DNA of 64,000 nucleotides from Penicillus capitatus (Eukaryota > Plantae > Chlorophyta): assembly GCA_965649825.1 (NCBI GenBank), contig OZ287699.1, forward strand, positions 372,001 to 436,000. The letters are read 5' to 3'. Of the stretch, positions 2,515 to 42,400 are shown one piece after another. Numbering within the stretch: the first letter of the stretch is position 1; every line of letters begins with the position of its first letter. The position numbers and the translations under genes were made by a program. The notes beneath the pieces were generated by a model. The model searched no databases. It had not been told where the DNA came from and was given only the letters and a program-made list of their open reading frames with translations.

Positions 2515-4099
2515 TCAGACGCACTTTTGGCGATGCGCATCAACGGCCTGCGCTTCGCCGTTCACTGAGGCATCGTCCTTCTTCTTCTTCTCAATCTCGT
2601 TCCCCCCTATCAACTTTGCGTACTTCTCTAGCATCAGTGCCTGTGCTTGACGTTGTGCCGCCGTTGCGGTCTGTGCTTGATCATCGATCTCTTTGAATGA
2701 GAGGCAGGCGATCAGAGTCGACCATCCGTCTTCAATGAATCCTAGCCTCTTGTCTCGCAGCACTTTGGTCTCCATAAAGTGTTGCCAGCCCCAATTCGAA
2801 GTTCCCTTTTCGAATCTATGCTCGAGCTCTGTGCCATCACTCCTCAGCACAGTGTGACAGTAAAGAGACGGACACCTTGGGTGATGCTGTGCTTCTCTGT
2901 GCGATGGTTGAGCACTTTCATTCTGAGCTTGACTTGTGTAGCACAGGATCCTGTGCAGACGAGATATACACCATAGAAACCTCCACCGTCGCTCCTCTCG
3001 AAATGCTCGAGCTTCAGCTTCCTGCACCGAACGCATCTGTCTTCCCGGATCGCCGCAAGACATGACAGATGTCCTCACCAAGTGGCGTTTGCCGTGCGGA
3101 TCTCGTCGGAGTAGATCTTCGAATCCACCATCTCCTTCAAATCGCGCAGCTGCCACTGCAACAGCCCTCCCATCTGACACGACTTCAGACGTCTGACAGG
3201 CTTACGGTGATGACGCATGGATTCCCTTTGGTGCTGACGATGAGGTTCTCGTTCAGTGGAGAGACCAGACTGATATTCAGTCCGATCGTAAAGCAACCCT
3301 TCTCCATGTGACCAGCATTCGGATCTCGCACAACAGATGCCGAGTTCTCTTTCCCCTCAAACCCCCACAGCGACCCTGGCTCGAATACTCGACGCGTTCC
3401 TGACACGCGCTCGAATTCAACGCGAGAACGTAGGGTGAGTGCTAGATGTGACCTCCACTCATTGTTTTGGACCAGTCCAAGTGATTTGTCAACTGAACGT
3501 TGAAGCGAATCTCCACCGGTTCAGTGTTGGAGGATTTAAGGTACATGCCGATACGTCCATCCTTGTTTTTCACACCAAGCTGCCTGAGGAGATGCAGAGA
3601 TAGAGTAAGTAAGAACCTCGAGACGCGAGATGTGCGGCTCACCACTGAAGTCCTGCGACGGAGAACGTGTCTGTCATGAATTCCGTGGTGTCTGAGTCTA
3701 ATAGATATCTGTGAATATGACACTGCCGAAGACCCCGGGTCAGGATTGACTCCTCTTTGTGGCGTCTGCTCACTTCGTATCGTCCCGAGAGTCGTTTTGT
3801 CTGGAGAGTGTATGCATAGTTCACGCCATTGCTTGACCCGCTTCCCCTGAACCGCCAGTCGAAGACATGACGCGATTCGCGGAGCGTAACGCACTTGCGG
3901 TCGCTGCTGCGTCTACTCATGAAACGCGCGTCTGTCGAAGCGAAGAAAGGGTGTGAAGGCAGACACCGAGATAGGAAACCGCGACGTCGTAGATGACGCG
4001 GCTCTTCGAGCTTTTTCTGTGGGATGAATCGTACGCGTGGTCGAGCGGTTGAAAGAATGTCACGTCGTAGGAGAGTCGTCCAAGCGACGTCGACGTCAA
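2515..4099 (-). CDS. MATH/TRAF-domain protein, apparently two MATH domains, multi-exon; ends uncertain
   Basis: MATH-like segments GRIGMYLKSSNTEPVEIRFNVQLTN, FEPGSLWGF and EHRFEKGTSNWGWQHFMETKVLRDKRLGFIEDG occur in successive exon ORFs (3442-3894, 3185-3406, 2515-3180). Confidence 0.7.
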
Positions 4100-6180
4100 C
4101 AGTTGAGATCGATAGCATGGATTCCTGTCCTCATAAGAAATCTAGCAGCATCCGTCACTAGATCGACAAAAGACGCACGACTTTACTGTTAACGCTGGAG
4201 ATATCTGTCTCCTGCTCCAATTTGCGGAGACAAGAGCTCGGTCAGGGCTCGATACGTTTCATCGGAACAATCACAGCAGCTGCCACATGCACAGTCGACC
4301 GGAGTATGTCCGTCCGTCTTTGTCTTGGAGAGTCTTCGATGCTTCGACAGATTGAAGGACCTGAATCAAACCACCGAACGAGAAAGATGAATTTTGCGAC
4401 GCCAATCGCGAACGACATTGGAGGTGAAGGTCACTCCATTGGCTGAGAAGATCTTTTCAATGAGAACCTCTTTATTTACTCACCGAGAAACGGTATCACA
4501 GTCTTTAGATCTGGCCCAACCGTTAGGCGTGTTTCCAGTTAACGACGTTAGAATTAGATGCCACCACGGAGTGCCTTGTTTCAGCTGAACGCGATCTGAA
4601 AGCAGGGATGGACTATATCACCTATCCGTTCTCACTTGTATACAATATAGGCGTCACGCAGTTCTTCTGTCTGAAGTCAGCAACAAACAGCACACAGATT
4701 CACGCAGTCTTGCACGCCGCTACACGTTTTTCCACAAAAGCAAGCTCATTCGAACGTTCAGTCTGACCACTCTCAATCATTCCGAGTTCCCGCTTAGGGA
4801 AAAGGCTTCCGCTGCGCAAGAAATGCAGAAAACGGAGAGCTTCACGAAAGTGGACTAGAGAGAGGGAGGAACAGCAACCTTGCCCCAACATGTCCACCGA
4901 TATCTGGCGACTGAGGTGCGCAAAGATCTGTTATGCGGAACCTTTTTTGCTCCACTCATCTAGAAAACAGACACCGCAACAAAGTGTAACGATCCAACAA
5001 CGCCTCCTTCCTGATTCTTTCGATGCGATCCACAAATCTCATGAGCATCGCATCACAGCTCAGTTAGTTGACCGTGACGTCACAGGTGATATGACCCATG
5101 GTTTTGATTTCTCTAAGTATCCCAACGGAACGCGGATCACCGTATCGAAGTAAGCAGAAAGTGCGTGGAAGTCTGCGACGATCTCTCTGGCTCGCTCACC
5201 GCCTTCTGTGAGATGTTCTTTCCCGAATGCCTCTCAGGACAAAAATCGTCCATGCAACGTCATCAAAACCATTAGCAGTCTTCAGTCCGTGATGCTGACA
5301 CCAACCCTTTAAATACAAGCTGTCACATCACTTCTCTAGCTCCCTCGATTCAGCTCGATCAAGATCAGAGTCTCGACAACGGCTAGTGGCGAGGGCAAGG
5401 AATCCATTATCTTGTCAATATATGTCGTGTTCGTTGTCAATGCGGTATCCCTCAGTACGATGAGATTGGTGCAAGACGTGGGCATCTGCTGGTTGTTTAC
5501 TCGAGCAATTCCGCGAACAATGTTCTGCTCACGAAAGAATCGCCGATATAAAAAACCTCTTCCCCGAGGACAGGTACCACATCAAACCCAAACGATGCAT
5601 TTCATACTCCCTGAGATCCGCCCTCGTCTTCTGAGATACCTCCAAGATCCCGGGCCGTCTTCCATTCCAAGCAGACGTATGGAGATCGCAGCCCTTACCG
5701 ACAGAAACACACTCGACCAGAAAGCACCTCTGCCAGCTTTACCAAGACTCCCGACAGTATTGGAGCTAACGAAACCCATCCAGCTGTACTGATGGTTTAG
5801 ATAATCTCCTTCGCTGAAGACGATGAAGAAGTTGCCATGGTCACGCCTTTCTCACTCTCTTCGCACAAAGAACGCGTCAGTGTCGGCCGAATTCTGAATA
5901 CCGTTTTTGCGAAGTCTTTCAACAGTGCCACTCTGGCGACGGCCGCAATCCGCCATGCTGGACAGGTCGCCGAATGCTGTCGCATAGCAGCATACATCAT
6001 TCTCAAAGAGGGCTCGTTGGACTACTTCTTGACAGCAGAAGGTTTCCCTTGGCGTCGCCTCGTTCTTCACCTTCCGACGCTTTGCTCCCAGCATTGTCTG
6101 ACATGACATGAGAGATCGCGACCTTTTACAGATTTCACGTCTCTGCGTTTCCCCCTTGCACCACCACATCGCCGTCGAGG

Positions 6181-7893
6181 ATGCAGACACGATCGTCGCC
6201 GTCGGTTCTCACCGCCCCTCGCGGCGTCGGTTTTCTGACACCACGGACGGCGTCGTCTTCACGTGTCGCCTCGTCTTTCCCGGGAACGGTCGATCGAACC
6301 CTGATCGCCCCCCGACGTTCGCATCCGATGAGCCGCTCGAGAAACGCCGCCGTCTACGTTACGGCGATCAAAGACGGCGAGGGGCTTGATCGTCCACTTC
6401 GCGTGGCTGTGGTCGGTGGTGGCCCTGCCGGAGCCTGCTGCGCCGAGACTCTGGCCCAAGGTGGCATCGAGACCTACCTCTTCGAACGCAAACTCGATAA
6501 CTGCAAAGTGCATGTCCTCAGAACGACACGTCTGTGCTCACGCGTGCGTGCTCGTAGCCGTGCGGCGGTGCCATTCCTCTGTGCATGGTCGACGAGTTTA
6601 ATCTACCGGAGAGCATCATCGACCGCAAAGTGACAAAGATGAAGATGATCTCGCCTTCCAACAGAGAAGTGGATGTCGGCAAGACGCTCGGAGAGAACGA
6701 GTACATCGGCATGCTTCGCCGAGAAGTGCTGGATGCCTACCTGCGCGATCGGGCAAAGGAACACGGGACGACTGTGATCAACGGCCTCGCAAAGTCTGTC
6801 AAACTTCCACAAGGCAGCGAGGGACCCATCAAGATTCTCTACAACAACTATGACAACGTGGATGGAAAGGTCAGCCGAGTGGGAGAGCGATGTGTGATGC
6901 TGGAAGTTGGTTGGGAGCGGTAGGGTCGTGTGGGCGAGGCTGGGGAATTGGAGGTGGATCTGGTTGTCGGTGCAGACGGTGCCAACAGCAAAGTGGCCGG
7001 AGCGATCGATGCCGGTGACTACGACTATGCCATTGCCTTCCAGGAACGGATGCGCATCCCAGACAACAAGATGGAATACTATAAGGTCGGTATCCACAAT
7101 AGCCATTGCCACTCTGATCTTTACGATCGTTGGTCGACAGGATCTGGCAGAGATGTATGTCGGAGACGATGTGTCGCCGGATTTCTACGGCTGGGTGTTT
7201 CCCAAGTACGATCACGTCGCCGTCGGAACGGGGACGGTGATCAATAAGACAGCGATCAAGGATTACCAACAGGCGACACGAGACCGATCAAAGATCAAGA
7301 CGGAAGGCGGTAAAATCATCCGCGTCGAGGCGCATCCCATTCCGGAACATCCTCGGCCCAACAGAGTCAAGGGACGCATCGCTCTCGTGGGAGACGCTGC
7401 TGGATACGTGACCAAATGCAGCGGCGAAGGCATCTACTTTGCGGCCAAGTCTGGAAGAATGTGCGCCGAGGCGATCGTCGAGGGATCCGAACGCGGAAAG
7501 AAGATGGTCGGCGAGGCAGCCTTGCGTGTTTATCTAGACAAATGGGACAAGAAGTACTGGGCGACGTACAAGGTCTTGGACATCCTGCAGAAGGTGTTCT
7601 ACAGGTCTCATCCCCTCGCGATGTCGTAGAGTGATGAAGGGAAGTGTACCTCTAGGTCGAACCCTGCACGAGAAGCATTTGTGGAGCTCTGTTCAGATGA
7701 CTACGTGCAGAAGATGACCTTCGATTCGTATCTGTACAAGACAGTGGCTCCGGGCAACCCGGTGGATGACTTTAAGCTGCTCGTCAAAACCGTCAGCAGC
7801 CTGATTCGAGCAAACGCGCTGCGGCAATCCAAGAACGGAACGAGCGTTACGTTCGCTTCGAGAGAGAAGGAAGGCGTCGCTGCCCGAGTTTGA
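6181..7893 (+). CDS. CHLP: Geranylgeranyl diphosphate reductase, plastid-targeted, about 5 exons
   Basis: Ser/Arg-rich transit peptide, then LRVAVVGGGPAGA, ERKLDNCK/PCGGAIPLCM, VGADGANS, VSPDFYGWVFPK, LVGDAAGYVTKCSGEGIYFA and FDSYLYK. Confidence 0.97.
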
Positions 7894-9232: not shown

Positions 9233-11187
9233 TAAGGGGTGCGGAATTGCCTTTGTCTGCGATAGGAGGTGGCGGCTGTTCGTCGGAATGTCGTCACGAG
9301 TCTTGGCATTCCTCCACCAACACGATGACGTGACGTGTGTGCTGTCCTGTCGCTTTCATGATGTGACGTCGTGTCTGTGCACCGTCACTTGCCAAGGCAA
9401 TCCTTAAATGGTCACACTTTTTCATTCGTTTCGACTGGTCTCTCTCCTTCTCAGTGTTTTCGCCTACTTCGTCGCCGGGATGTTATAGCCATCGACGAAC
9501 AACGGCGCCCAGCCGAATGCCGTCATCATCACATGGAAGGCTTAGACGACAACGTGGATTCGATGACATTGATCTGATCAATCAAAAGAAATGGATCGGC
9601 TGCGCGAAACAATGCTCTGTTTTGTTCATTTGTGTTACCGACGGGCTGGACGCTGAAAGGCCGCCTTATTCTCTCTTACTTGTTGCAGACCATACACACC
9701 TGTCAAGGTCAAGAACGAGACACACTTTAGTCTCCGAGGAGTCGATTCGATTACGGTTCTGTCTCCAGGAAACCTTCACCAGATTCTCACAAAGAACTTA
9801 CCTGCGTCTTCCACGCATCTCTTGGCTGCTGGATGGACCTGACGTCGACTGTTCTCGTAAAGGAGAGAAGAGAGCGATATTTCACGCTCCTGGGACTTCA
9901 GACGCAAAGACACCTTCAAAAGTATAATGAATTTGAGCTGGCCCATCTTCGAAGAATGGGGAATACCTAGAAGAGGAAGCCAATCCTTCTTTCCTTGTGG
10001 TGCCACCACATCATTGTCTTTAACGCGAAGTCATCACATCACCGTCGATGCCGATCGTTTCTTGGTTTGTCTGTCCGAAAGAAGGATCCATTCGAGCCGA
10101 ATGTTGGATGGAACCCTGGACGACGATAATATCTGAAGCGTTTATCTGCTGCAGCCTACTGATCTCGTCGGGAGGATTGCCACCAAGAGCAAACAGCTTC
10201 CTGTAAAGATCAATCTGGTCCAAGTGCATTGGCTGTCCTCGTGCATGAATGAAAGACATCTTTCACGAGCCCACTGAGAAGCAGCTCTGAAAAAGTCAGA
10301 TCGATTGTTTGATGTAGATGGTCTGCCAGTTGGATTCTGAGGCGTCTTTGCTGTCAGACCGACGCGTAACTCGTAATCTCACTCTTTCATAACAGAGTGT
10401 TGTCATCTATACTGTTCTGGGCCGTGTGGATCGCAGATGCCGGCCTCCAGCGGTCTGACAGACACGTCGTCGGTCCTGCCTTATCTGATTTCATCTTCGA
10501 CTGTCGCATTGGAACATTCCTGCGTCGCGCATCTCGTAATTGCAAAAAACAGACGTCTTATCGCCTCTATGGACGGCCTAGATCTCGAGTCTTTATCCAT
10601 CTGTGTTTTCAGTGCATCTGTGAAGTTTCCTGTGAAGAATTCGGGTACATCAACCGACCTTAGTGCTCATTGGACTTGACGACCGTCACCTTCAGCTTTC
10701 TCGATTAAGCAAATCTTTTCGATGTTACATTCGTCTGATCGAGAAACAGCCGTACTTCATTTCTGAACCTTATTTGTCGGTCGATGTTTTCCGTCCACAA
10801 AAAGTTCGACGACGAATTCGACGAGGTAAAGCCAAGACGCATTTCTCTCGACAACTAAGCCAATTTCCGTCCGCAGAACGACGTCAAGAGCCACAGCGAG
10901 TCTTTCTACCCTAAAAAGATGAACGACGGTTCCCTCCACTGCGCCAAACCCTCAGAACAGCGGGCGGGAAAGAAAAACGACCGTGCCCTAACGAAGACGG
11001 TAAGGATACCGAACTCTTCCGCCTGTCCCGCCATGGTCGGTGTTTTCCCAGCACGAGCGTTCAACGGTCGCCGAAGAATGCGCAGTCATCGAAGACTGTC
11101 CGAAGAAGCCGGTCGCTAGCGAAGTCTGGGTGCCGTACCGACTAGGAACACCTCATACGATCAACGTGGTCGACGCCGCGCGACGCA

Positions 11188-14100
11188 ATGACCGACCTCG
11201 ACGGGCCGAGGTGCGCGACAACAGCGCGAGACCACGAGCTCCGATTCGTGCCTATTTTTCAGGGAGGCCGACGCGAGGACGGAAATTTGAGTCCAAGACT
11301 CAACGTTTATCAGGCTTCGAAGGTGATAGGCCCCTTTCCGATGACTTGTATGCAACTATGTATTCAACAGATGTGGGACCCTGTGAGCGTCGTCAACACG
11401 TTTCCCTCGCACACTTCTCTTCCTCGATGCCGCGAAAAGGGCTCTTCGGTTCTCTTCTCCAGAGAATTCGACGGCGGACAAGCTCAGCGCATCAAATCAC
11501 GCATGACAAGGGGCACTGCTGCCAAAAACACGCCCCCGGTCAGCTCAACTTGGCCGCCTCTCCCTCAGACTGAACGGCACAGCTCCCGAGGTTCGACCCT
11601 CGATCGCGCAGAGGTGCGGTGTTTCTTGTCTCGTTCCGGCCTGCAGCTCTCCTCACAGGGAAACCAAAAGAAGATCTGCGAGATCGAGCTGGAGGGACAC
11701 GGTCTCGTGCAGATCCTTCAGGTCCGAGGGAGGCTTGCAGGGAGGATTGTCGAGCGAGCGGGACCGTTCTCGAGGAGGATTACCGTTCCGCTCTTCTCCA
11801 AGGGTTTCTCCGATCCAGAAGAAGCGACACGGGGATTGGCTCGCCTGCCGCCGAGCGCCGTCCGCCGTCGCGTTCACGTCCTTTCCGACAGAGAGAATGG
11901 CGTGGAGACGTTCATCTACGTGGGGGATCTAGGACTTCTCGGTGGCGGAGACAGAGAGCCCCCGGCTGGCGGCGGCGCGCTCGGACGCCAAGCTGCCGCC
12001 AGCTCCCGGCCAGAGAAGAAGCACTCTCTGGTCTCGCCCGACATCTTTCGCCACTATGCCGGGAGGAAGGAAGAATTCAGCGAACTCTTCGAGGCGTTCA
12101 CCTCAAGCGGCGAGTCGGTCGTCGTCAAGGCAATCGCCGGCCCGGCCGGCATAGGAAAGACGCAGCTCGCAATAAAGGTGTTCGAGTGGCTCAAGATGAA
12201 GGGCAGCTACGACCACACCTTCTGGATCCCTTCGGACTCGAAGGAAAACCTTTCCGCCGCCTTCCTGAACATGGCAGACTACCTGGAGATCTCTGCAGAC
12301 GACGAGATCCCTGTGTTCGTCGGCCGCGTTCACCAGGAGCTCGGAGGGTCGCGATGCCTCTACGTCTTCGACGACGCCTTTGATCTCGAACTGATCCGCG
12401 AGTACCTTCCACCGGAGGTCGGGCATGCGATTGTCACGACGCGAAACGCTGTAGCAGGGAGCTGGGAGGGCGACACGGTGCAGCTCGGGCCGTTCGACGA
12501 GTGCGATGCGTGGTTCCTTGCGCACAGCTTCGGATACACCCGGTCGCCGCACTCGGAGGGTCTGGACGATTTGATCGAGTTGCTGCCTCCCTACCCGCTC
12601 ACTCTGGCGCAGTTCTTCTCGATGATGAAGTACGAGGGCGTGCCGAGCCCCGCCGAATGGCTGCAACAGGTGGAACGGTACGCCCCTTCGAGATACGAAG
12701 CCGGGGTCGTAGAGATGCTCTCCGAAGAGCACGACGTCAGAGGAGCCAGCGCGATGGTCTACCTGTTTCGCTCGAACGTGCTGAGCATTCTGAGGGAACC
12801 CGACGACCTTGGAACGCACTGTCTCGACACACTCATCAGGCTGTCGCTGCTGGACCCTAATGGGGTGCCCATCAAGTGGGTGTGCGAATGGCACGGACAA
12901 GGAGATCGGCAATCCGAAGCAGAGGCGCAGACATCCGTAAAGCTTCTCGAGCACTACTCGTATGTCTCGTGGAACGAGAAGAACAATCAAATCTACATTC
13001 ACGCAGAGACACAGCTCCTTGCGAGACACCTGCTCTTACACAGCAACGAAGCAATTCCCGAATGGAGAGAGAAGCTCGCGAAAAAGGCCGAAGACAGAGC
13101 AAAAGATCACATCAAGACCATCGTCCATTCGATAAGGAAATACACCAGCGACTGGAGAACGGATCGTTCGAACCGAGAATCGTGGACGTCGCTCGCGCGG
13201 AACGGGGTCTCGCTCCTCAAACACTGCGAAGAGAGCAACGACATTGGCGTGGAGTTGAAGCTAGTCGAGCACATTGCATGGGCTTACTCTAAGCTGTGCA
13301 TGTTTCGCGAGTGGCTCTCCTACCGTCAAAGAGCCCTCGACGTGTGCGAGCGCCTCAAAGGCGACGCGGACCATCCGGATCTCGTCCAATGCATCCGGAA
13401 CTACGCCGTCGGACTCTCGCGAGTCGGAAGAGACAGCGAAGCACTGCCGTTCCGCAAGAGAGCGCTCGACATGTGCGAGCGCCTCAACGGCGACACGGAC
13501 CATCCGGACCTCGTCCAATGCATCCAGAGCTACGCCATCGGACTCGAGCGAGTCGGAAGAGACAGCGAAGCACTGCCGCTCTACAAGAGAGCCCTCGACA
13601 TGTGCGAGCGCCTCAACGGCGACGTGGACCATCCGGACCTCGTCCAATGCATCCGGAACTACTCCGCCGGACTCTCGCGAGCGGGAAGAGACACCGAAGC
13701 ACTGCCGTTCGACAAGAGAGCCCTCGACGTGTGCGAGCGCCTCCACGGCGACGCGGACCATCCGGACCTCGTCCAATGCATCCAGAGCTACGCCATCGGA
13801 CTCGAGCGAGTCGGAAGAGACAGCGAAGCACTGCCGCTCTACAAGAGAGCCCTCGACATGTGCGAGCGCCTCAACGGCGACGTGGACCATCCGGACCTCG
13901 TCCAATGCATCCGGAACTACTCCGCCGGACTCTCGCGAGCGGGAAGAGACACCGAAGCACTGCCGTTCGACAAGAGAGCCCTCGACATGTGCGAGCGCCT
14001 CAACGGCGACGTGGACCATCCGGACCTCGTCCAATGCATCCGGAACTACTCCGCCGGACTCTCGCGAGCGGGAAGAGACACCGAAGCACTGCCGCTCTAC

Positions 14101-14787
14101 AAGAGAGCCCTCGACATGTGCGAGCGCCTCAACGGCGACGCGGACCATCCGGACCTCGTCGACTGCATCCAGAGCTACGCCGTCGGACTCGAGCAAGTCG
14201 GAAGAGACACCGAAGCACTGCCGCTCTACAAGAGAGCCCTCGACATGTGCGAGCGCCTCAACGGCGACGCGGACCATCCGGACCTCGTCGAATGCATCCG
14301 GAACTACTCCGCCGGACTCTCGCGAGCGGGAAGAGACACCGAAGCACTGCCGTTCGACAAGAGAGCCCTCGACATGTGCGAGCGCCTCAACGGCGACGCA
14401 GACCATCCGGACCTCGTCGAATGCATCCAAAGCTACGCCGTCGGACTCGAGCAAGTCGGAAGAGACACCGAAGCACTGCCGCTCTACAAGAGAGCCCTCG
14501 ACATGTGTGAGCGCCTCAACGGCGACGCAGACCATCCGGACCTCGTCGAATGCATCCAGAGCTACGCCGTCGGACTCAAGCAAGTCGGAAGAGACAGCGA
14601 AGCACTGCCGCTCTACAAGAGAGCCCTCGACATGTGCGAGCGCCTCAACGGCGACGCGGACCATCCGGACCTCGTCGGATGCATCCGGGACTACGCCGTC
14701 GGACTCGAACGAGCGGGAAGAGACGAAGAAGCGTTGCCCTTGCGCGAGAGAGCAGAGGAAATGCGTAAGCGGCTTGGCAGTCAATAA
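11188..14787 (+). CDS. NLR-like STAND protein: N-terminal module + NB-ARC-type NTPase + 11 TPR-like repeats; intronless, 1199 aa (true start may be ATG 11503)
   Basis: Walker A GPAGIGKT (12139), Walker B LYVFDDA, sensor IVTTRN, GLPL-like YPLTLAQ, MHD-like IHAETQ, then kinesin-light-chain-type TPR units (DHPDLV..CI..Y..GL...GRD.EALP..KRALDMCERL). Confidence 0.93.
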   Translation: MTDLDGPRCATTARDHELRFVPIFQGGRREDGNLSPRLNVYQASKVIGPFPMTCMQLCIQQMWDPVSVVNTFPSHTSLPRCREKGSSVLFSREFDGGQAQRIKSRMTRGTAAKNTPPVSSTWPPLPQTERHSSRGSTLDRAEVRCFLSRSGLQLSSQGNQKKICEIELEGHGLVQILQVRGRLAGRIVERAGPFSRRITVPLFSKGFSDPEEATRGLARLPPSAVRRRVHVLSDRENGVETFIYVGDLGLLGGGDREPPAGGGALGRQAAASSRPEKKHSLVSPDIFRHYAGRKEEFSELFEAFTSSGESVVVKAIAGPAGIGKTQLAIKVFEWLKMKGSYDHTFWIPSDSKENLSAAFLNMADYLEISADDEIPVFVGRVHQELGGSRCLYVFDDAFDLELIREYLPPEVGHAIVTTRNAVAGSWEGDTVQLGPFDECDAWFLAHSFGYTRSPHSEGLDDLIELLPPYPLTLAQFFSMMKYEGVPSPAEWLQQVERYAPSRYEAGVVEMLSEEHDVRGASAMVYLFRSNVLSILREPDDLGTHCLDTLIRLSLLDPNGVPIKWVCEWHGQGDRQSEAEAQTSVKLLEHYSYVSWNEKNNQIYIHAETQLLARHLLLHSNEAIPEWREKLAKKAEDRAKDHIKTIVHSIRKYTSDWRTDRSNRESWTSLARNGVSLLKHCEESNDIGVELKLVEHIAWAYSKLCMFREWLSYRQRALDVCERLKGDADHPDLVQCIRNYAVGLSRVGRDSEALPFRKRALDMCERLNGDTDHPDLVQCIQSYAIGLERVGRDSEALPLYKRALDMCERLNGDVDHPDLVQCIRNYSAGLSRAGRDTEALPFDKRALDVCERLHGDADHPDLVQCIQSYAIGLERVGRDSEALPLYKRALDMCERLNGDVDHPDLVQCIRNYSAGLSRAGRDTEALPFDKRALDMCERLNGDVDHPDLVQCIRNYSAGLSRAGRDTEALPLYKRALDMCERLNGDADHPDLVDCIQSYAVGLEQVGRDTEALPLYKRALDMCERLNGDADHPDLVECIRNYSAGLSRAGRDTEALPFDKRALDMCERLNGDADHPDLVECIQSYAVGLEQVGRDTEALPLYKRALDMCERLNGDADHPDLVECIQSYAVGLKQVGRDSEALPLYKRALDMCERLNGDADHPDLVGCIRDYAVGLERAGRDEEALPLRERAEEMRKRLGSQ
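13330..14778 (+). repeat. Coding tandem array, 11 x 129 bp (43-aa TPR-like units) plus a partial unit
   Basis: The CATCCGGA motif recurs at a 129-bp period (13372, 13501, and so on). Eleven HPDLV motifs are present in the protein. Confidence 0.97.
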
Positions 14788-17700
14788 AATCTCCATCTTG
14801 ATCGGCTAACGTATTTTTATCTTCCAAGTTCCATTTGAAGGTTTCTACACATGTTTGTTTTTACATATCGTGGCCACGTCGTTAGGACTCTGGAAACGCG
14901 AACGACGATGAAGGCTTGTTGCATCACAAGGATTGTAAACACCTTTGTGGTGCGGATTAAATGGACTCGGAACGAACTAACGCGTTAAGCCGAATGCACG
15001 ATCACGTCGAATGCATCTCTCCTCGGTAAGTTGCGCGAAGCCGAGTCTGATGCCAATACGACAAAATCCGATATGCTGGCAATTGCGTTGATTGTTACGC
15101 TTCTACTATCGTACAAACTGCAGCATGGCTGTCGGTTGTGAGTTGGGTGTGATCGTTTCTCGATGACGAATTTGCAGTCGTTGCTCTTAATGTCGTCTTC
15201 TCATTCGATGTCATTAGCGTTTTGCGATTTTGCCACTCCATGCTGCTAGATTAGAGTGAGAAAACGGAGTTATCTGCTCTTCCTTTCCGGAGCTAGTGGT
15301 AAATGCTTTTCGTCTAGGTAGCTTTTTGCAATTTTCTTGCCGTTGGAGCGTCGATTGTAGAGAAGCGTAAAGTTGTGATATCGATATCGTTGCACTGCTT
15401 TCATCGACGGATCCCGATAACGTCGACTGAACAAAGGGGTGTTGCCAAGATTTGACGTGGCAATGTGACTGCCTCGTTTCCGATGGGTTCACGTCTTGGG
15501 GGGCGCAGGTAGAGTCATCTGAGGCGTCGCTCTCTGGCCATGGACGAGGGATGACTCACCTGTTCAGCGGGTCACATCGTTTTGGGCGTAGAAATGCGTA
15601 GGAGAGGAGACATTGAGACTCTCTGTTCTTGTAAGCTTTTGGACTCTGAGCGTGCCTTCGGCGTAAAACGTGTGTGAGCAACGCTCACCCTGGCTGACGA
15701 CGAGGCGCTAGCACCCTCGCGTGCCGTTGTTCCTTATCCACCGTTGTACCAGCATACTCCGTACTTATCGGCGCTAGACTTCTTCAGACAAGCGGAACGA
15801 GGAAATCCCGACGCTCGCCACGACGACACCCTAGCCGAGGACGAACCGCCCAGTCCGGGGGAGGACGGACCCACCGACGCAGAAGTTGACGAGGAAAGAC
15901 CTCAACGGGAGTCAGAGCAAGGGCGACAAGGGGCGCGACAATAGTAGCATTTGATTCTATCAGGCACGTGGTTCTTCTAGTAGGCGTCGTCTTACGTGCA
16001 GCATCACTTGCTGCAAACGCGTTCTCAGGTACAGATGCTTCATGTTTCGTGATTGTGTGTTTTCTTTGCGCCAACCGTTATAAGATCTAAACTCTAATCT
16101 TGTTTTTCGTCGTTCGTATTTCGTTCGACTATGTCGTTTGGTTAGTTCTTAGCAGTCCGTCAGTTAAAGCAGAGCTTTTTGTTGTAACACTCAACTGCTT
16201 TCACTCCTCAACTGCGTGAATTCCTCTGCTATCTTTAATTAACCGTTTAGTCTTACGTTAGTTTGTTGTCTTAGTTTTTGTAACTACTTGCATGTATGTC
16301 TTCTTTCTACGGACTGACTAACACTCACTTGTTGATCTTGTTTTCAAGAAGTCTCCTTTTTGGTGTTTTTTGTCGCGCAATGTCTTTTGGCTTTAAAGGT
16401 CGTCCGATTGCTAACTTCTTCTCGAGACACAATACCATATCACAAAGAGCCTTGCTTGCCAACACGAAGGAGAATGACGAATAATGGATGAAAAACAGCA
16501 TAAGAAAGCCATAGTGTGAACATATGTTTTGATTCTTTGTAAAATACGAAACGATCTTACAGTAAGATCTCACTAGGTCACCATCCTCCGATGTCGTTCT
16601 CACTCTTTGATACGCGCCGATCTTGTCTTGTACTTTATCTCCGTTTGTCTGATTTGGCTTCTCGGCTGGAGTAAGCACCCTTCCTATCTTTTAGTGAAAT
16701 CTCTTGTGCGTTTCCTTTCCGGGGACCTCCCTAATTATTTGCTAGTTTTCAGTTTTCATTGGCAGGTTCTCATTTCTTGTCATTTCTACTTTTTAACCTG
16801 TGAAACCCGTAACGCTCTTTCCATTGGACGAATTTTCAATCCTTTCGTTTTGCTTGACTCTTCACGAGCGCACTTTTCCTTCTTTGTACTCATGGATATT
16901 AACAACACATCCGTTCGACTTCCTTTACTCTCAAGCCTCCAAGTTCCTGGAAGAGGTGAGCCTACAGTGTTTGCATACCCTATTGCTATTTTAGAAGATC
17001 GATAATTTTTAACCTGATCTGCTGCTTTTACAGTCGGCAACGTGCTCTGTGCACGAATCTGTCGCTGGCAAAACTGGGATCTCCGGAAGGATGCAGGGGT
17101 ATGAATCAACATTCAATTAGTTTCGTTGGCCGGAAAGAGTCTTCCATGCAACCTGGAGTGCGAATGAAAATGGTCTGTTCCTCATCCTTGCCTTTGATGT
17201 GACGATTGTGACGTTTCGATGTCTGGCTCGCTGCTTTCGCGTCACCTTACTAAACGGACAACTCAAATGTTTGCCGGCACCATCCTCAGGTCAACCTCAC
17301 ATCGGCATTCACAACAATTTCGACGTCAGAATGCCGAATCTCAGCGAAATGTCATTGGAGTCCATGTGTTTTGAAAACTTCCATATCAATGTCATCTATG
17401 CAGCAACGTGTGACGGTTGGTTAACAGAGAGACACTCTATGCCAACAGCTGGGCGTCTGAGGTGTTCCTGGTGATCCCGGTTGTCGTACTCGAACGCGAA
17501 CAAACACTCGGCAATACTCTGCGTGTATGGGTTGCCGCACAGGTAACTTTCAAAAATAGCGAGGTGAGCGGCGCCGACATCAAATTCCCTTCGTTCCTGT
17601 CCTCACTTCAGACACAGCAGTTTGATAAATGACTAGCTGACCAAGTTCCCTGGGATCGTGGTTTTGATCTCTTGCATGTATGTACGATTGATCTTAGTAT

Positions 17701-32685: not shown

Positions 32686-34400
32686 CTACGGTAACAAACT
32701 CAAATTCGAAGGTGGTGAGTGAATTAGACTATCCGAGTGTTCGTAGTCTAAGATGCGAAAGAGTCGAGTCGACTGCTGGCAGCTTGCAGATATCAGACAG
32801 AAACGTGTGCAAAGATCCACTGCTGCGATGATGAATCTTTGTGATCCGTCTGGCTTCATCGGTCCAATGACATCTAAACCTACGCACTGGTTCATCTGCT
32901 GCCAGGTATTGAATGATTGCGCGACAGGAGGGTCTTGTCGCGCAAAATGTTGACATCTGTCACAACTTTGCACCCAATCTTGCACATGTGATGGGGCATC
33001 CGGAAAGTAGATCATCTTCTGCAGGTTCTGGAGGGTTGTTTGGACTCCATAATGTCCGCTCTGCTCATGTGCTCTGCGCAACCACTGAATGATTTCACCC
33101 CTGTCGAGGCAACACGGTCTCCGGTGTATTCCATCGGCAGAGTATTCCATCTTGTTTGTCCGCAACTGAAAAGAACTGCTTCGATGCTTGAGACGTGCTC
33201 TCTGTTGCGGTGTCGCTTCTTCGGGACATCTCCCAGTTCTCAGATAATCTTCCATTTGCAGATACCATTCCGTCCATTCCTTACTGATCTTAGCTGCCAT
33301 CACCGTCGATCCTTCTGCCTTCGAATTCTTTAGCTCTCTCCTCCACCACGGACTCCTGCTGAGTAAGTCGGCCACGTCGTTGGCCACTCCGTCGACGTGC
33401 TGCACTCTTCCTGCAGCCAGATTTAGCGCGTCCAAATGCTTCTGCACCAAAAAGCTCTGGTCTTGGGTACCGCTGGCTTGCTTTACAACAGTCGCGTTCG
33501 TAAAGATTGTCAGCCGCCTGCCCATGATTAGATGTCTCACTTCCTTCGCCGCCCTTTCCATCCCGAGCAACTCTGCCTTCCCACCTGAATGGAACTTATC
33601 TCTTTGGAAGCCTCCAGCCCCGAGCCGCATCAATTGTTTCGTTTCTCTGCTGAAGAGAGCGTATCCGAATCCGTCTCTGCTCGCGTCGACGTATAGATCG
33701 ACAGAGATGCCGGATGCATCAGGTCGGTTGTATCACAAGCGGCTCATTGTCTTGATGATAGTACTCCAACGATCAGGATCTTCTTGCCAGTAGTTTCCGA
33801 TCGTCACTGCGTCAGCGTTGCACAACTGCTGCCAGACTTCTGACGTCGCTTCGACAGTAGCGCCAGTTGCTCTTCGGCCGACAGTGCCGACTGCGGGCAC
33901 GCTCCGAGAATGAGTTCCTTCAGGACATGCCACTTCTGTTCTGTCTCTATCGGGTTGACGGGAGCGCCAAAGAACTGATACACGAAAGCGGCGTTGCCCG
34001 TAAAGGCCGCGTTGAAGGCAGCGTTGGAAACGAAATGAGGTTCGATCTTGTCAGTCACTTGTCGCAACAGCTCAAACGCGGGGGGAACCGCACTGAAGGC
34101 TCTTAACCACCCGTCGTATGCGTGGGTGATAGTCGTCCTCGATGAGCACAGCAGCGCTCAGGATCGACGCGAACGCCTCGCGGTCAAGCCTCGAGGCAAG
34201 GCGCTCCGAAACCAATTGTGATCCCGTCACGATGAATTAAAACCGAGGTTGCAGTGCTTGTTAAAAAGGGGCGTTATTGACAAGATCTAGCGTCTTTTAT
34301 ATCAACAAGTATCCATCAGTGTATCCGTCAGTCAAATCATTCGCTCCTCGGCTTGACAATCGGTTGCAGGAAATGTAGCTCCTAACATCGGTCTTGTAAC
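32686..34400 (-). mobile_element. Defective Ty3/Gypsy LTR retrotransposon: LTR, PBS, gag fragment, RNase H, truncated integrase; protease and RT core missing
   Basis: PBS-like TGGTTTCGGAGCG (34214-34202) lies 2 nt after ...TCACA. Also present: gag-like WHVLKELIL...LLSKRRQKSG, RNase H LYVDAS..GFGYAL and GVANDVADLLSR, integrase HEQSGHYG...CDRCQ and GLDVIGP..VDLCTR, and an in-frame TGA near 33733. The outer LTR end is uncertain (34390-34682). Confidence 0.88.
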
Positions 34401-39423: not shown

Positions 39424-42400
39424 ATGAGCTCGGAACACAAAAGCGATGACCTGTCGTTTATGGAATTCGGCACGGCTGACGATTGTTCCAATTTCGACTT
39501 CAGTCAAGTGCCGAACACATTTCCGCCAAGGTTTCCGAGAGCAAACGCCTTTGCTTGCAGAGCTTGACGTGGGAAGATTCGGAGAGTCATGTACCGTCCC
39601 TCTCGCAACGCTCCGTAAGACGCATGCTCGTCGTTTGAGTGGAAGACGTAATATCTATTCAGGCAACGGGAAGCGCCATGGACTCCACAGACCTTGCTGC
39701 AGATCTAGCTGACGTCCGCCCCCTTTTCTCCCCTGCCCTCACATGCTGACTCCTGTGAGCCACAGATGCAATTCCAAGATGCGTTTCATGAGGAGGAGGA
39801 GTCTGATGAAGAAGTCGCTGAATGGGCATGCGCGTAAGGGCATCCAATTCTGATGTGACAGATAGATTAAGAGATGTGCATGTAGGTACTGTGGCATTCA
39901 GAATCCATCCTGTGTCGTCAAGTGCATCAACACAGGGAAATGGTTCTGCAATTCGCGCATTTCTGGACTGGCCGGGTCATGTGCTGTGGTCCATTTGGTC
40001 AAATCGAAGCATAAGGAGGTGCAACTCCATAAAGACTCACCTCTGGCCGACACCATTCTTGAATGCTATGCCACGGGTCTGGCACAAGAGGCAGAGCAAA
40101 GGGTGTGACCAAGGGAGCGTGCGTGCGTTTTAGGTATTCGGAATGTCTTTGCTTTGGGATTCGTGCCAGTCAAATCAGAGAATACCGTTGTTCTGCTCTC
40201 ACGCGAAGTGCAGTCAGGACTCCCGGCATTGAAGGATCTCGATTTGGATCTCAGTCTGTGGCAGCCGATTATCGAAGAACGTGCTTTTGTGCCATGGCTT
40301 GTCCGCGAGCCTTCCGAACAGGAAGCGCTCAGAGCACGCCAGATCACGATTCAACAAATCAACAGGTATCGCTTCCGTAGCAGGGAGCCAAAAAACAGAG
40401 CAGCGTTCTGCGGTCTAGACTGGAAGAGATGTGGAAGAGTGACCCCAGTGCTAACGTAGAAGAGCTTTACCTTCCAAACATGGACGAAGAGGCAACACCT
40501 GTGGCACTGAAGTATGAAGATGCAGACGAGTACCAGGCAAGATGCCGATGCAGATCAGTCCTGTGCAAAACAGAGATGCCGTGTGCAGAATGTATTCTAT
40601 CCCTTGATTCAAACAGAAGCAGATCACGACAAAGCCGTCAAAGAATCACAGAGCCGAGATAACATCACTGTCCGTTGGGACATTGGACTCAACAAAAAAC
40701 ACTTGGCCTACTTCTACTTCTCCAAGGTTAGCAAACTTGCATGGAATACAAGGATCTATGCTCTCGCTATCCACAGGACTCGACGGAACTGAGATTGATG
40801 CCGGGAGATGAGCTACGTTTGAAGCATCCATGTCCCAACGGCAATGCGCCGTGGGAGAGTACAGGGAGCGTTATTCGTTTGGATCCCTCCGAAGAGGTCT
40901 GCCTCGAACTGAGAGCCACCGTAAGTCACCCAAAATCGTACGTTTCTACATTCGAGTGGACGCTACAGCACGTTCCCAATGACGTGAAAGTGGGATTCTT
41001 GGTGGAGTATGTATGGAAGGCGACATCTTTCGATCGAATGAAGACGGCGTTGAAGACCTTTGCAAAGGACGAGACGTCTGTAAGTGGCTATCTCTATCAC
41101 AAGCTCTTGGGCCACGAATTGGCACCTCAAACACTCAAGGTCCCGCTTCCCTCTTCGGGATACTCTGTCAATGGTCTGCCTGCATTGAACGATTCGCAAG
41201 TCAATGCCGTCAAGAGTGTGATACAACAACCGCTGAGTCTTATTCAAGGACCGCCAGGAACTGGCAAGACCGTGACGACGGCAGCTATTGTCTATCATCT
41301 GTCGACGCTCTGTCATAGTCAAGTACTCGTTGCAGCCCCCAGCAACGTCGCTGTCGATCAACTGGCTGGCAAGATCAGCGCTACTGGACTAAAGGTGTGT
41401 GCTGTCTGAATGGCAGCGAGATCGCACTCTGTGCTGCAGGTGGTGCGTATCTGTGCAAAATCCCGCGAGGCTTTAGGTTCTCCCGTCGAGCATCTCACCC
41501 TACACTACCAAGTCAACAATTTAAGAATTCCTGGAAAGAAAGACTTCCAGAAACTCCAGCAGCTAAAGAACGAGAAAGGCGAACTGGATGACGAGGATGA
41601 GAAGAAGTACAAGCAGTTGAGACGGGCCTACGAAAGAGAGATCCTACAGAACGCAGATGTCGTATGCTGTACCTGCGTCGGTGCCGGAGATCACCGTGTC
41701 GCCACTTTCCGATTCAAACAAGTGATGGATGACGTTCAGAAGCCTCCCTGCTCATGTCTGTCGTATCAGGTATTGATTGACGAGGCAACACAGGCGACGG
41801 AACCGGAGTGTCTGATTCCGATGGTCATGGGCGTGAAACAAGTGGTTCTGGTTGGCGATCATTGCCAGTTGGGTCCAGTTATTATGCACAAAGCTGTTGC
41901 CAAGGCTGGCCTGTCGCAATCGCTGTTCGAGCGACTGATGCTTCTGGGGATCAAACCCATTCGTCTGCAAGTGCAGTATCGCATGCATCCGTGTCTATCA
42001 GAATTTCCGTCCGATACCTTCTATGAAGGCTCCTTACAGAACGGCATCATGGAGGCGTCCAGAATCTCCCCGGGTGTTCATTTTCCCTGGCCGGTGCCGG
42101 AGAAACCGATGATGTTCTACGTCCAGCTGGGATCCGAAGAAATCAGTGCCAGTGGAACGTCTTACCTCAACAGAACCGAAGCCATCAGCGTCGAGAAAGT
42201 CATTTCCACGTTCCTTCAAGGAGGCGTCATGCCAAAACAGGTCCATCCCTCTATTCTCTCTCTATGTGTGACTATTCTGTGTAGATTGGCGTGATCACGC
42301 CTTACGAAGGGCAGAGGGCTTACATCATGAGCGTCATCCAGAGACTGGGCACTCAGAATCAGCATCTCTATCGTGAGCTCGAGGTGGCCAGTGTCGACTC

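Follow-up and report, generated by a model that had tools for sequence, protein, structure and literature searches.

A 64,000-nucleotide stretch of the genome of the green alga Penicillus capitatus (GCA_965649825.1, contig OZ287699.1, positions 372,001 to 436,000; hereafter the window) harbours, at window positions 11371–14787 on the + strand, what is most likely a genuine and selectively maintained algal nuclear gene, coding for a STAND/NLR-like ATPase that consists of an N-terminal extension, a leader domain, an NB-ARC NTPase and an array of tetratricopeptide repeats (TPRs). The gene is of a known kind, i.e., an NLR-like STAND gene of bacterial type, and what is new is its N-terminal leader domain, which is undescribed in any library searched. 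Sequence comparisons give good support to a sharing of this gene between two domains of life, most simply by transfer into the alga. We consider it probable, on balance, that the whole block from the leader to the TPRs came from uncultured, host-associated-looking Bacteroidota through an old bacterium-to-alga transfer, and was then domesticated as an NLR-like switch in which the leader would serve as adaptor; the direction of the transfer, the receptor function and the adaptor role are what we infer from these comparisons.

The initial annotation of the window had drawn attention to a peptide of about 90 amino acids upstream of the NTPase, CEIELEGHGLVQILQVRGRLAGRIVERAGPFSRRITVPLFSKGFSDPEEATRGLARLPPSAVRRRVHVLSDRENGVETFIYVGDLGLLGGG, which matches exactly the translation of positions 11677–11949 (+) and lies within an open reading frame (ORF) of 3.6 kb (11188–14787, +, 1199 aa); it had related this peptide to an N-terminal domain of Amoebophilus/Cardinium-related Bacteroidota. 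Searches of protein libraries did return Bacteroidota. A word-indexed search with the leader alone found one close relative only; phmmer, run exhaustively against 1.84 billion representative proteins, returned 15 matches, 11 of which are close relatives (58–78% identity) from large ENA contigs and three of which are bacterial (P0016, P0017 and P0019; 33% identity, E 4.5e-4 to 7.9e-4 over the whole library). P0014, a 3138-aa repeat protein (E 9e-12), was ignored as a compositional artefact without an aligned stretch. A profile built from 11 leaders then recovered nine further bacterial proteins (E 1e-10 to 1e-23), among which is a named protein of a Bacteroidota metagenome-assembled genome (MAG). 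Judged by these scores, the similarity of the leader to bacterial proteins is far beyond chance and establishes homology, and the motif given in that annotation (G.FSR...P...R.IHVL...VYVG.LGL.GG) fits P0016, P0024 and P0025 almost letter for letter. The only taxa in which the leader was found are this algal lineage and uncultured Bacteroidota; so scattered an occurrence, with the nearest relatives across the boundary between domains of life, is what one expects of a horizontally acquired gene.

The similarity is not confined to the leader. The window protein is colinear from the leader to the TPRs with P0019 (MEN0016374.1, annotated as a tetratricopeptide repeat protein of a 'Bacteroidota bacterium' MAG), which is built of a lipoprotein signal, leader, NB-ARC and TPRs (27% identity over 903 aa, E 1e-83). 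Following their signal, MEN0016374.1 and MEO1300999.1 (GCA_039208545.1) have the same succession of leader, GGG and linker, NB-ARC, helical region and TPR_10/TPR_12 repeats, but differ in the lipoprotein signal itself (…LLQSC), in their degenerate, non-tandem TPRs and in a GC content at third codon positions (GC3) of 0.47, as opposed to the eukaryotic first exon and intron, the eleven near-identical TPR units and the GC3 of 0.73 of the algal gene. A second algal architecture (P0010 and P0015: leader, helical module, NB-ARC, TPR) shows a comparable relationship, P0010 being colinear with bacterial P0017 over leader and helical module (28% identity over 497 aa, E 2e-52). P0017 bears two leader copies (residues 69–139 and 292–384), the first of which is degenerate and devoid of G-x-F-S and GGG.

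As anticipated, the leader is shared with Bacteroidota proteins of varied cargo, including an NB-ARC-TPR protein of the same architecture. In bacteria it precedes NB-ARC-TPR (P0019), a helical module of ~420 aa (P0017), a DUF294/SidM_N-like nucleotidyltransferase (L011, where the gene is frameshifted) or acidic repeats (L018), and it follows a lipoprotein-type signal as judged by eye (…LLQSC, …LLESC, …LLTSC; SC/GC lipoboxes); algal copies lack this signal and have in its place an 81-codon exon rich in Ser, Thr, Pro and Arg, together with an intron. The contigs of the bacterial carriers are truly bacterial: L002 encodes QueA, LeuRS, LptF/G and TrmD, and L007 encodes CysRS, S12, S7, EF-G, S10 and UvrC; other carriers occur in five Tara samples and on one contig of the Joint Genome Institute (JGI), the scan of JGI metagenomes giving one short contig only. 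On Tara contigs (L011, 1877–4513; L010, 7022–7267) the leader gene is broken, with signal peptide, leader and nucleotidyltransferase split over different reading frames and an HSP90 fragment of 81 aa in the vicinity, which suggests pseudogene-rich and possibly host-dependent genomes; transposases are also found on the bacterial contigs. L009 (ENA ERZ26858540 ctg213609_4.29x), of bacterial-type composition (observed/expected CpG 0.59), carries at 2566–4077 and 13227–14090 a leader gene and two NACHT-domain genes, with much non-coding space.

The NTPase core of the algal protein is also bacterial in character. Pfam NB-ARC (PF00931) matches ORF residues 302–483 at 35.8 bits (cut-off 23.5), with all NTPase motifs intact (Table 1). 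With leader and TPRs removed, the NB-ARC/helical region gives 148–150 bits against the Bacteroidota proteins P0019 and P0020, and the NB-ARC alone reaches 87 bits with the FxSxx_TPR profile as against 28.5 bits (E 5.8e-6) with the best PDB chain, ZAR1. At full length the FxSxx_TPR model (NF040586) gives 317.4 bits (cut-off 300), much of this score coming from the TPRs. ORF residues 1–304 matched no Pfam family at E up to 1 and no NCBIfam family, and PADLOC returned no defence-system match.

The leader is marked by a small set of conserved residues (G-x-F-S, P, C, L, H and GGG). G, F, S, P, L, G, L and GGG are invariant in an alignment of 11 sequences; one Cys, one His and L-x-GGG belong to the best-conserved residues of 21 leaders, and an acidic/Pro tail behind the GGG, GGG-[DE]-x-E-[PAT]-[PS], is kept in both kingdoms. 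The window copy retains all the conserved residues except the Cys, which is present at this site in the orthologous locus of another assembly (L004) and in every other full leader, algal or bacterial. AlphaFold2, supplied with a 14-sequence alignment, predicts a four-strand beta meander followed by two helices and two strands (DSSP b-b-b-b-a-a-b-b; mean predicted local distance difference test, pLDDT, 75.8; predicted template modelling score, pTM, 0.65) and a disordered GGG tail, with pLDDT below 50 from model residue 98, the model ending at window position 11970. Foldseek searches of PDB and BFVD with this model gave nothing significant (best E 0.4–0.5), the 50 PDB matches listed include no ubiquitin-like chain (best E 0.5, template modelling score at most 0.29), and the leader profile met nothing relevant in the PDB sequences. 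A ubiquitin-like fold is therefore not supported, the predicted fold not being a beta-grasp, and the suggestion that the glycine-rich end is reminiscent of a processing site is speculative.

By analogy with other NLRs, the leader would be an N-terminal output or adaptor domain, and we prefer this role to that of a pro-domain removed at the GGG. In the latter case cleavage would occur at the G-G-G that closes the leader, with the leader acting as a small Cys/His autoprotease or with a deubiquitinase-type or other protease doing the cutting; in bacteria this would detach the cargo from the lipid anchor, and in the alga it would bring about activation or maturation of the NLR. Cleavage would account for the strong conservation of Cys, His and the terminal L-x-GGG in front of a conserved acidic/Pro tail and a disordered linker, as well as for the constant position of the leader between a signal or extension and variable cargo; as a lead only, Amoebophilus-type symbionts live free in the host cytosol and encode many TPR proteins and ubiquitin-specific proteases (PMC8831229). 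We nevertheless regard a pro-domain as possible rather than likely, given that the predicted fold of the leader resembles no protease and no ubiquitin-like protein in PDB or BFVD, that Ser replaces the Cys in the window copy and Arg the His in P0009, and that the 'stand-alone' leaders ending at GGG are fragments of frameshifted genes.

Transfer from a bacterium to the alga is favoured because the leader is more divergent (identities of 40–44% among bacterial and 55–69% among algal leaders) and associated with a wider range of cargo in bacteria, because it is absent from all other eukaryotes searched (none among the 1.84 billion representative proteins), because the NB-ARC core resembles bacterial NB-ARC-TPR families (87 versus 28.5 bits), because the 3.1-kb block is intronless with the sole intron at its edge, and because the bacterial versions carry lipoboxes. 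All of these points but the last also speak against the opposite direction, which we deem unlikely, where the family would have its origin in the alga or in relatives of it, from which intracellular Bacteroidota would have taken it up as eukaryote-like effectors, adding a lipoprotein signal. Such an uptake would fit with the many eukaryote-like TPR, ANK and F-box proteins of intracellular Bacteroidota such as Amoebophilus (PMC8831229), with the host-dependent appearance of the bacterial contigs (broken genes, HSP90 fragment, transposases) and with algal leaders that are not nested among the bacterial ones.

Several observations count against a domesticated bacterial gene as we propose it. The algal leaders are equidistant (31–32%) from the three bacterial types and not visibly nested, so that the direction, argued from distribution and parsimony, is not proven. 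The window copy has a Ser at the near-invariant Cys position (PLFSKG, 11788–11805), and the leader has so far been found in the alga on STAND proteins only, hence no leader-tagged partner, as the adaptor model predicts, is known there. The GC3 of the gene stands 12–15 points above that of its neighbours, for which our reading does not account, and the intron, the start codon and expression are deduced from comparison between loci. Finally, a word-indexed search for NB-ARC homologues did not return even P0019, and closer NB-ARC relatives may therefore exist elsewhere.

As for the donor, the labels obtained were 'Bacteroidota bacterium' MAGs only, i.e., an assignment at the level of the phylum. 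The leader searches returned no Amoebophilus or Cardinium protein, a scan of named bacterial genomes with leader alignment A2 found no relative, tblastn of a bacterial leader against plasmids gave no match, and the 90%-identity clusters of the ribosomal proteins and EF-G of L007 provided no finer taxonomy. The bacterial leader contigs have a GC content of 47–52%; for A. asiaticus and Cardinium we take it to be ~35–39%. We found no paper linking Amoebophilus or Amoebophilaceae with NB-ARC, and none in which the accession numbers occur; Amoebophilaceae are core associates of the coral-skeleton alga Ostreobium (PMC10223477), which we regard as a lead only. The earlier proposal of a bacterial effector gene captured by the algal nucleus is retained in part, for the shared homology and the nuclear integration, with a direction that we argue for and a source named as Bacteroidota.

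The structure of the gene emerges from the comparison of related loci (Table 1), and comprises 1123 codons in total. Relative to L004, substitutions show codon periodicity only from 11659 on, and indels measure 3 and 9 nt downstream of this position and single bases upstream, indicating that the 5' part of the ORF (11188–11658) is not one coding stretch; coding constraint begins at 11659, behind the putative intron, and the first 157 codons of the ORF are therefore not what had been assumed initially. In four loci, a 243-nt open exon starting from a conserved ATGTGGGAYCC joins the leader in frame once the interval between them is removed; its exact length of 243 nt, its open frame and its phase are shared by the window, L004, L015 and, with ATA for ATG, L014. 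The block CAGATGTGGGAYCC is kept in four loci, and comparison with L004 reveals no indels inside the exon and 1-nt indels on either side. Constraint on this exon appears weak, because its substitutions are almost without codon periodicity (0.26/0.26/0.31 by position).

The signature AG/GT...YAG/GG upstream of the leader is kept in seven loci (with a GC donor in L016), enclosing intervals of 43, 45, 45, 45, 45, 47 and 49 nt. Two 1-nt indels relative to L004 (11633 and 11651) both fall within the putative intron, which is of the same size class as the three introns of the UPF1 gene of the window. Splicing keeps the frame in the window, L004, L015 and L014, and L001 is out of frame; in L016 and L017 the comparison revealed no start of exon 1. 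An intron of 276 nt with its donor just after ATGTGGGACCCT was rejected in favour of the 45-nt one, because its GT is not conserved in L014 and the introns of this genome are 44–48 nt long. The mini-intron lies precisely at the 5' edge of the bacterial-derived block, in which there are 0 introns as opposed to three in 2.0 kb of UPF1 coding sequence. The description of the gene as intronless hence applies to the 3.1-kb transferred block, and not to the gene, which has a conserved mini-intron and a eukaryote-specific first exon upstream; its neighbours do contain introns, as had been noted, although these are tiny (44–48 nt).

The ratio of nonsynonymous to synonymous substitution rates (dN/dS) relative to L004 is 0.31 in the leader, 0.29 in the NB-ARC and 0.73 in the linker (dS 0.67–0.80 in leader and NB-ARC, 0.46 in the linker), which demonstrates purifying selection on leader and NB-ARC as far as substitution patterns can. 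It is therefore very improbable that the gene is a functionless remnant of an old transfer in the course of decay: broken related loci (frameshifts in L001, and the truncated TPR part of L004/P0002) and the unusual GC3 would suit such a remnant, but the 1123 codons read through without interruption, leader and NB-ARC both have a dN/dS of ~0.3, every NTPase motif is present, and the repeat array is actively homogenised and diversified. L001 (4478–6234 of ENA ERZ25074695 ctg339181_23x) is a degraded paralogue that has lost its TPR part; its exon 1 is out of phase and its leader is frameshifted behind VHVFSN, and this degradation suggests that the leader-NLR family undergoes birth and death.

Integration of the gene into the algal genome is established by comparison with L004, from a 4-Mb contig of another assembly, which carries the orthologous locus at 76% nucleotide identity through the gene and aligns in the flanks as well (window 9552–10621, 16159–16271 and 17055–17302). 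The sample of L004 contains at least four paralogues on four contigs at 116–180x, each beside eukaryotic genes. Composition further points to a long residence: the observed/expected CpG ratio of the ORF (1.23) is close to that of the window (1.14; range within the window 0.89–1.44) and distant from that of bacterial contigs (0.56–0.71), and relative synonymous codon usage correlates with that of host exons (r=0.48) and not with that of bacterial genes (-0.17 to -0.34). That the gene is richer in GC than its surroundings, as the initial annotation had stated, is correct (60% vs 51%; GC3 0.73 vs 0.58–0.61 in exons of UPF1, CFAP91 and the kinase), while the same statement for CpG does not hold, the value lying inside the window range; GC richness is not a trace of the donor, because the bacterial relatives have a GC3 of 0.47 and a CpG ratio of 0.56–0.71. 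Bacterial DNA co-assembled into an algal scaffold, or a chimeric join, for which there is a precedent in a related contig that is really chimeric (L014), is excluded, as far as sequence comparison goes, by the aligned flanks in an independent assembly, the host-like dinucleotide content and codon usage, the conserved spliceosomal mini-intron and an identity to bacterial proteins of only 27–33%.

L014 (ENA ERZ25074695 ctg340236_5x, 337 kb) joins an algal leader locus (1095–2383), 70% identical to window 10686–11964 and with a CpG ratio of 1.2–1.3, to a compact bacterial genome from 2384 onwards (beta-lactamase, glycosyltransferase, sulfatase; CpG ratio 0.6–0.8). Curiously, the join lies right behind GGGDREPPS, at the domain border; it is probably a low-coverage misassembly.

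Table 1. Features of the NLR-like gene and of other annotated elements in the window
Feature	Position	Strand	Description
Exon 1 (putative)	11371..11613	+	start codon and 81 codons, MWDPVSVVNTFPSH..., Ser/Thr/Pro/Arg-rich, eukaryote-specific N-terminal extension
Mini-intron (putative)	11614..11658	+	45 nt, GT-AG, AG/GTGCGG...CACAG/GG
Exon 2 (putative)	11659..14787	+	leader to stop codon
Leader domain	11659..11949	+	~97 aa, ends GLLGGG 11932–11949; homology to Bacteroidota proteins
Linker	11950..12060	+	predicted disordered at its start, DREPPAGGGALGRQAAASSRPEKK...
NB-ARC NTPase and helical/winged-helix region	12061..13329	+	Pfam NB-ARC E 6.7e-9
Walker A/P-loop	12139..12162	+	GPAGIGKT, intact
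Walker B	12358..12378	+	LYVFDDA, intact
Sensor motif (TTR)	12430..12447	+	IVTTRN, intact
MHD-like motif	12991..13014	+	IYIHAETQ, intact
TPR sensor array	13330..14787	+	eleven 43-aa (129-bp) TPR_10/TPR_12 units; stop TAA 14785–14787
ChlP	~6100..7700	+	three ORF pieces, intron-split, TIGR02028 E 5.3e-87
Integrase_H2C2 fragment	32689..33732	-	ORF fragment, E 2e-12; Ty3/gypsy-type retroelement remnant
UPF1	~40.1..43.0 kb	+	zinc-binding, 1B and helicase domains
UPF1 mini-intron	41395..41439	+	45 nt
UPF1 mini-intron	41722..41769	+	48 nt
UPF1 mini-intron	42241..42284	+	44 nt

The neighbourhood of the gene is that of a eukaryotic nuclear genome (Table 1). Genes for CFAP91, UPF1, TRAPPC13, GCN5L1 and RRM proteins are present, along with trypsin-like proteases, ABCG transporters, a kinase and a Ty3-type integrase fragment. 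That the host is an alga follows from an intron-split nuclear ChlP (geranylgeranyl reductase), found together with CFAP91, UPF1 and TRAPPC13; ChlP lies ~4 kb upstream of the NLR-like gene, with its FAD-binding motif VAVVGGGPAG and N-terminus near 6415. The UPF1 introns are GT-AG, two of them in frame, and their removal yields an uninterrupted UPF1 sequence. The window contains no relic of a dinoflagellate spliced leader and gave no match to Rfam. Between 37.7 and 64 kb there are also a weak NPHP3_N (P-loop) match (E 4.7e-4), three trypsin-like pieces and a second ABC2_membrane match; the NPHP3_N piece is not a paralogue, since a six-frame phmmer search of the window with the full-length protein returned nothing but the gene itself.

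The TPR array is highly regular. Tandem Repeats Finder describes 13330–14724 as 10.8 copies of a 129-bp period at 91% identity, and Pfam recognises TPR_10 (E 5.6e-66, 10 stretches) and TPR_12 (E 5.7e-62, 7 stretches). Its eleven units are of two alternating types; two of them (13588–13716 and 13846–13974) are 100% identical in DNA and other pairs 97–98%, which suggests very recent unequal crossing-over or gene conversion. The differences among units number 255/258/158 at first, second and third codon positions and are confined to 13 of the 43 columns, a pattern that, on the sequence, is one of repeat homogenisation with diversification at few sites. Together with the intact NTPase motifs, the excess of differences at first and second positions would be in keeping with receptor behaviour.

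Among known systems, the family NF040586 of FxSxx-COOH TPR (AfsR-type STAND) proteins has the same NB-ARC core and TPR_10/TPR_12 repeats, but its model is without leader (the match starts at aa 289), and its FxSxx/maturase context has no equivalent at this eukaryotic locus: the ORF pieces of at least 110 aa in the window gave no radical SAM enzyme with Pfam or NCBIfam, the short FxSxx-COOH peptide not having been searched for. From its sequence context, the window protein is not a member of the FxSxx-COOH system, the neighbouring families being eukaryotic or generic. NLR-like NB-ARC-TPR proteins with highly similar hypervariable repeats were reportedly described in fungi and other eukaryotes by Dyrka and colleagues in 2014, and in Ectocarpus by Zambounis and colleagues in 2012, where each TPR is said to form a separate exon. 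Such eukaryotic proteins resemble the algal one in having an N-terminal output domain, an NB-ARC and near-identical TPRs varying at few positions, and differ, in a comparison made by description only, in their N-termini (HET, HeLo, PNP_UDP and others); unlike the one-exon-per-TPR organisation of Ectocarpus, the whole array sits here in one exon. Plant NLRs and Apaf-1/CED-4 (best PDB chain ZAR1, 6j5t) belong to the same NB-ARC fold family and share the switch mechanism, but at 28.5 bits they are distant, and the window protein has TPRs in place of LRR or WD40 repeats and no CC, TIR or CARD; no LRR, WD40, CC, TIR, CARD or PYD was matched in it by Pfam. By analogy, it is a protein that would work like an NLR while standing outside the plant and animal NLR clades.

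Concerning the leader, the closest parallel in concept may be the effector-associated domains and death-like adaptors of bacterial conflict systems, reportedly treated by Kaur, Burroughs, Iyer and Aravind in 2021, which are likewise short N-terminal domains common to STAND NTPases and unrelated cargo of the same lineage. The leader has no Pfam match, EAD1-11 included, and its bacterial carriers are exported lipoproteins as opposed to cytoplasmic immune proteins. Ubiquitin-like and Gly-Gly leaders (NHLP/Nif11, and viral leader proteases cutting at G/G) are also N-terminal modules that end in L-x-G-G(-G) and precede variable cargo, but here the predicted fold is not a beta-grasp and the cargo is a large multidomain protein; nor does the leader fit the GG leaders of ABC transporters, because a Sec/lipoprotein signal precedes it.

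These elements can be assembled into a possible history and mechanism. In the bacterial ancestor, a leader of ~90 aa would have stood between a lipoprotein signal peptide and interchangeable cargo. After an old transfer, the gene would have adopted the codon usage and CpG content of its host and gained, at the 5' edge of the block, a first exon of eukaryotic type and a spliceosomal intron of 45 nt, the exon replacing the bacterial lipoprotein signal and spacer, and it would have multiplied into a small family in the alga. The fast-diversifying TPR array would bind a ligand, nucleotide exchange in the NB-ARC would drive oligomerisation, and the clustered leaders would give the output, most likely through protein–protein contact with leader-bearing or other partner proteins, as do the N-termini of other NLRs. 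In a more daring version, which we rate as a long shot, the leader would be a new self-contained Cys/His processing module of ~90 aa, cutting or cut at L-x-GGG, with which intracellular Bacteroidota release lipid-anchored effectors into the host cytoplasm and which the alga reuses as NLR bait; if so, a leader-processing activity of symbiont or host would switch on an algal immune receptor, and the alga would possess an integrated decoy borrowed from the effector system of the symbiont itself.

Movement of NLR-like STAND receptors between bacteria and eukaryotes has been proposed; to our knowledge, concrete cases with an identifiable donor-type lineage and colinearity of the whole architecture are rare. 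Here, two multidomain architectures and their leader are common only to one algal lineage and uncultured Bacteroidota, and the algal copies display what may be the steps of domestication, namely the gain of a first exon and of an intron where it meets the transferred block, codon usage adapted to the host, growth into a gene family and a sensor that is rapidly both homogenised and diversified. The gene therefore offers a testable system for how a bacterial gene may become a eukaryotic receptor, for what the leader does, and for whether algae police intracellular bacteria with the bacteria's own parts.

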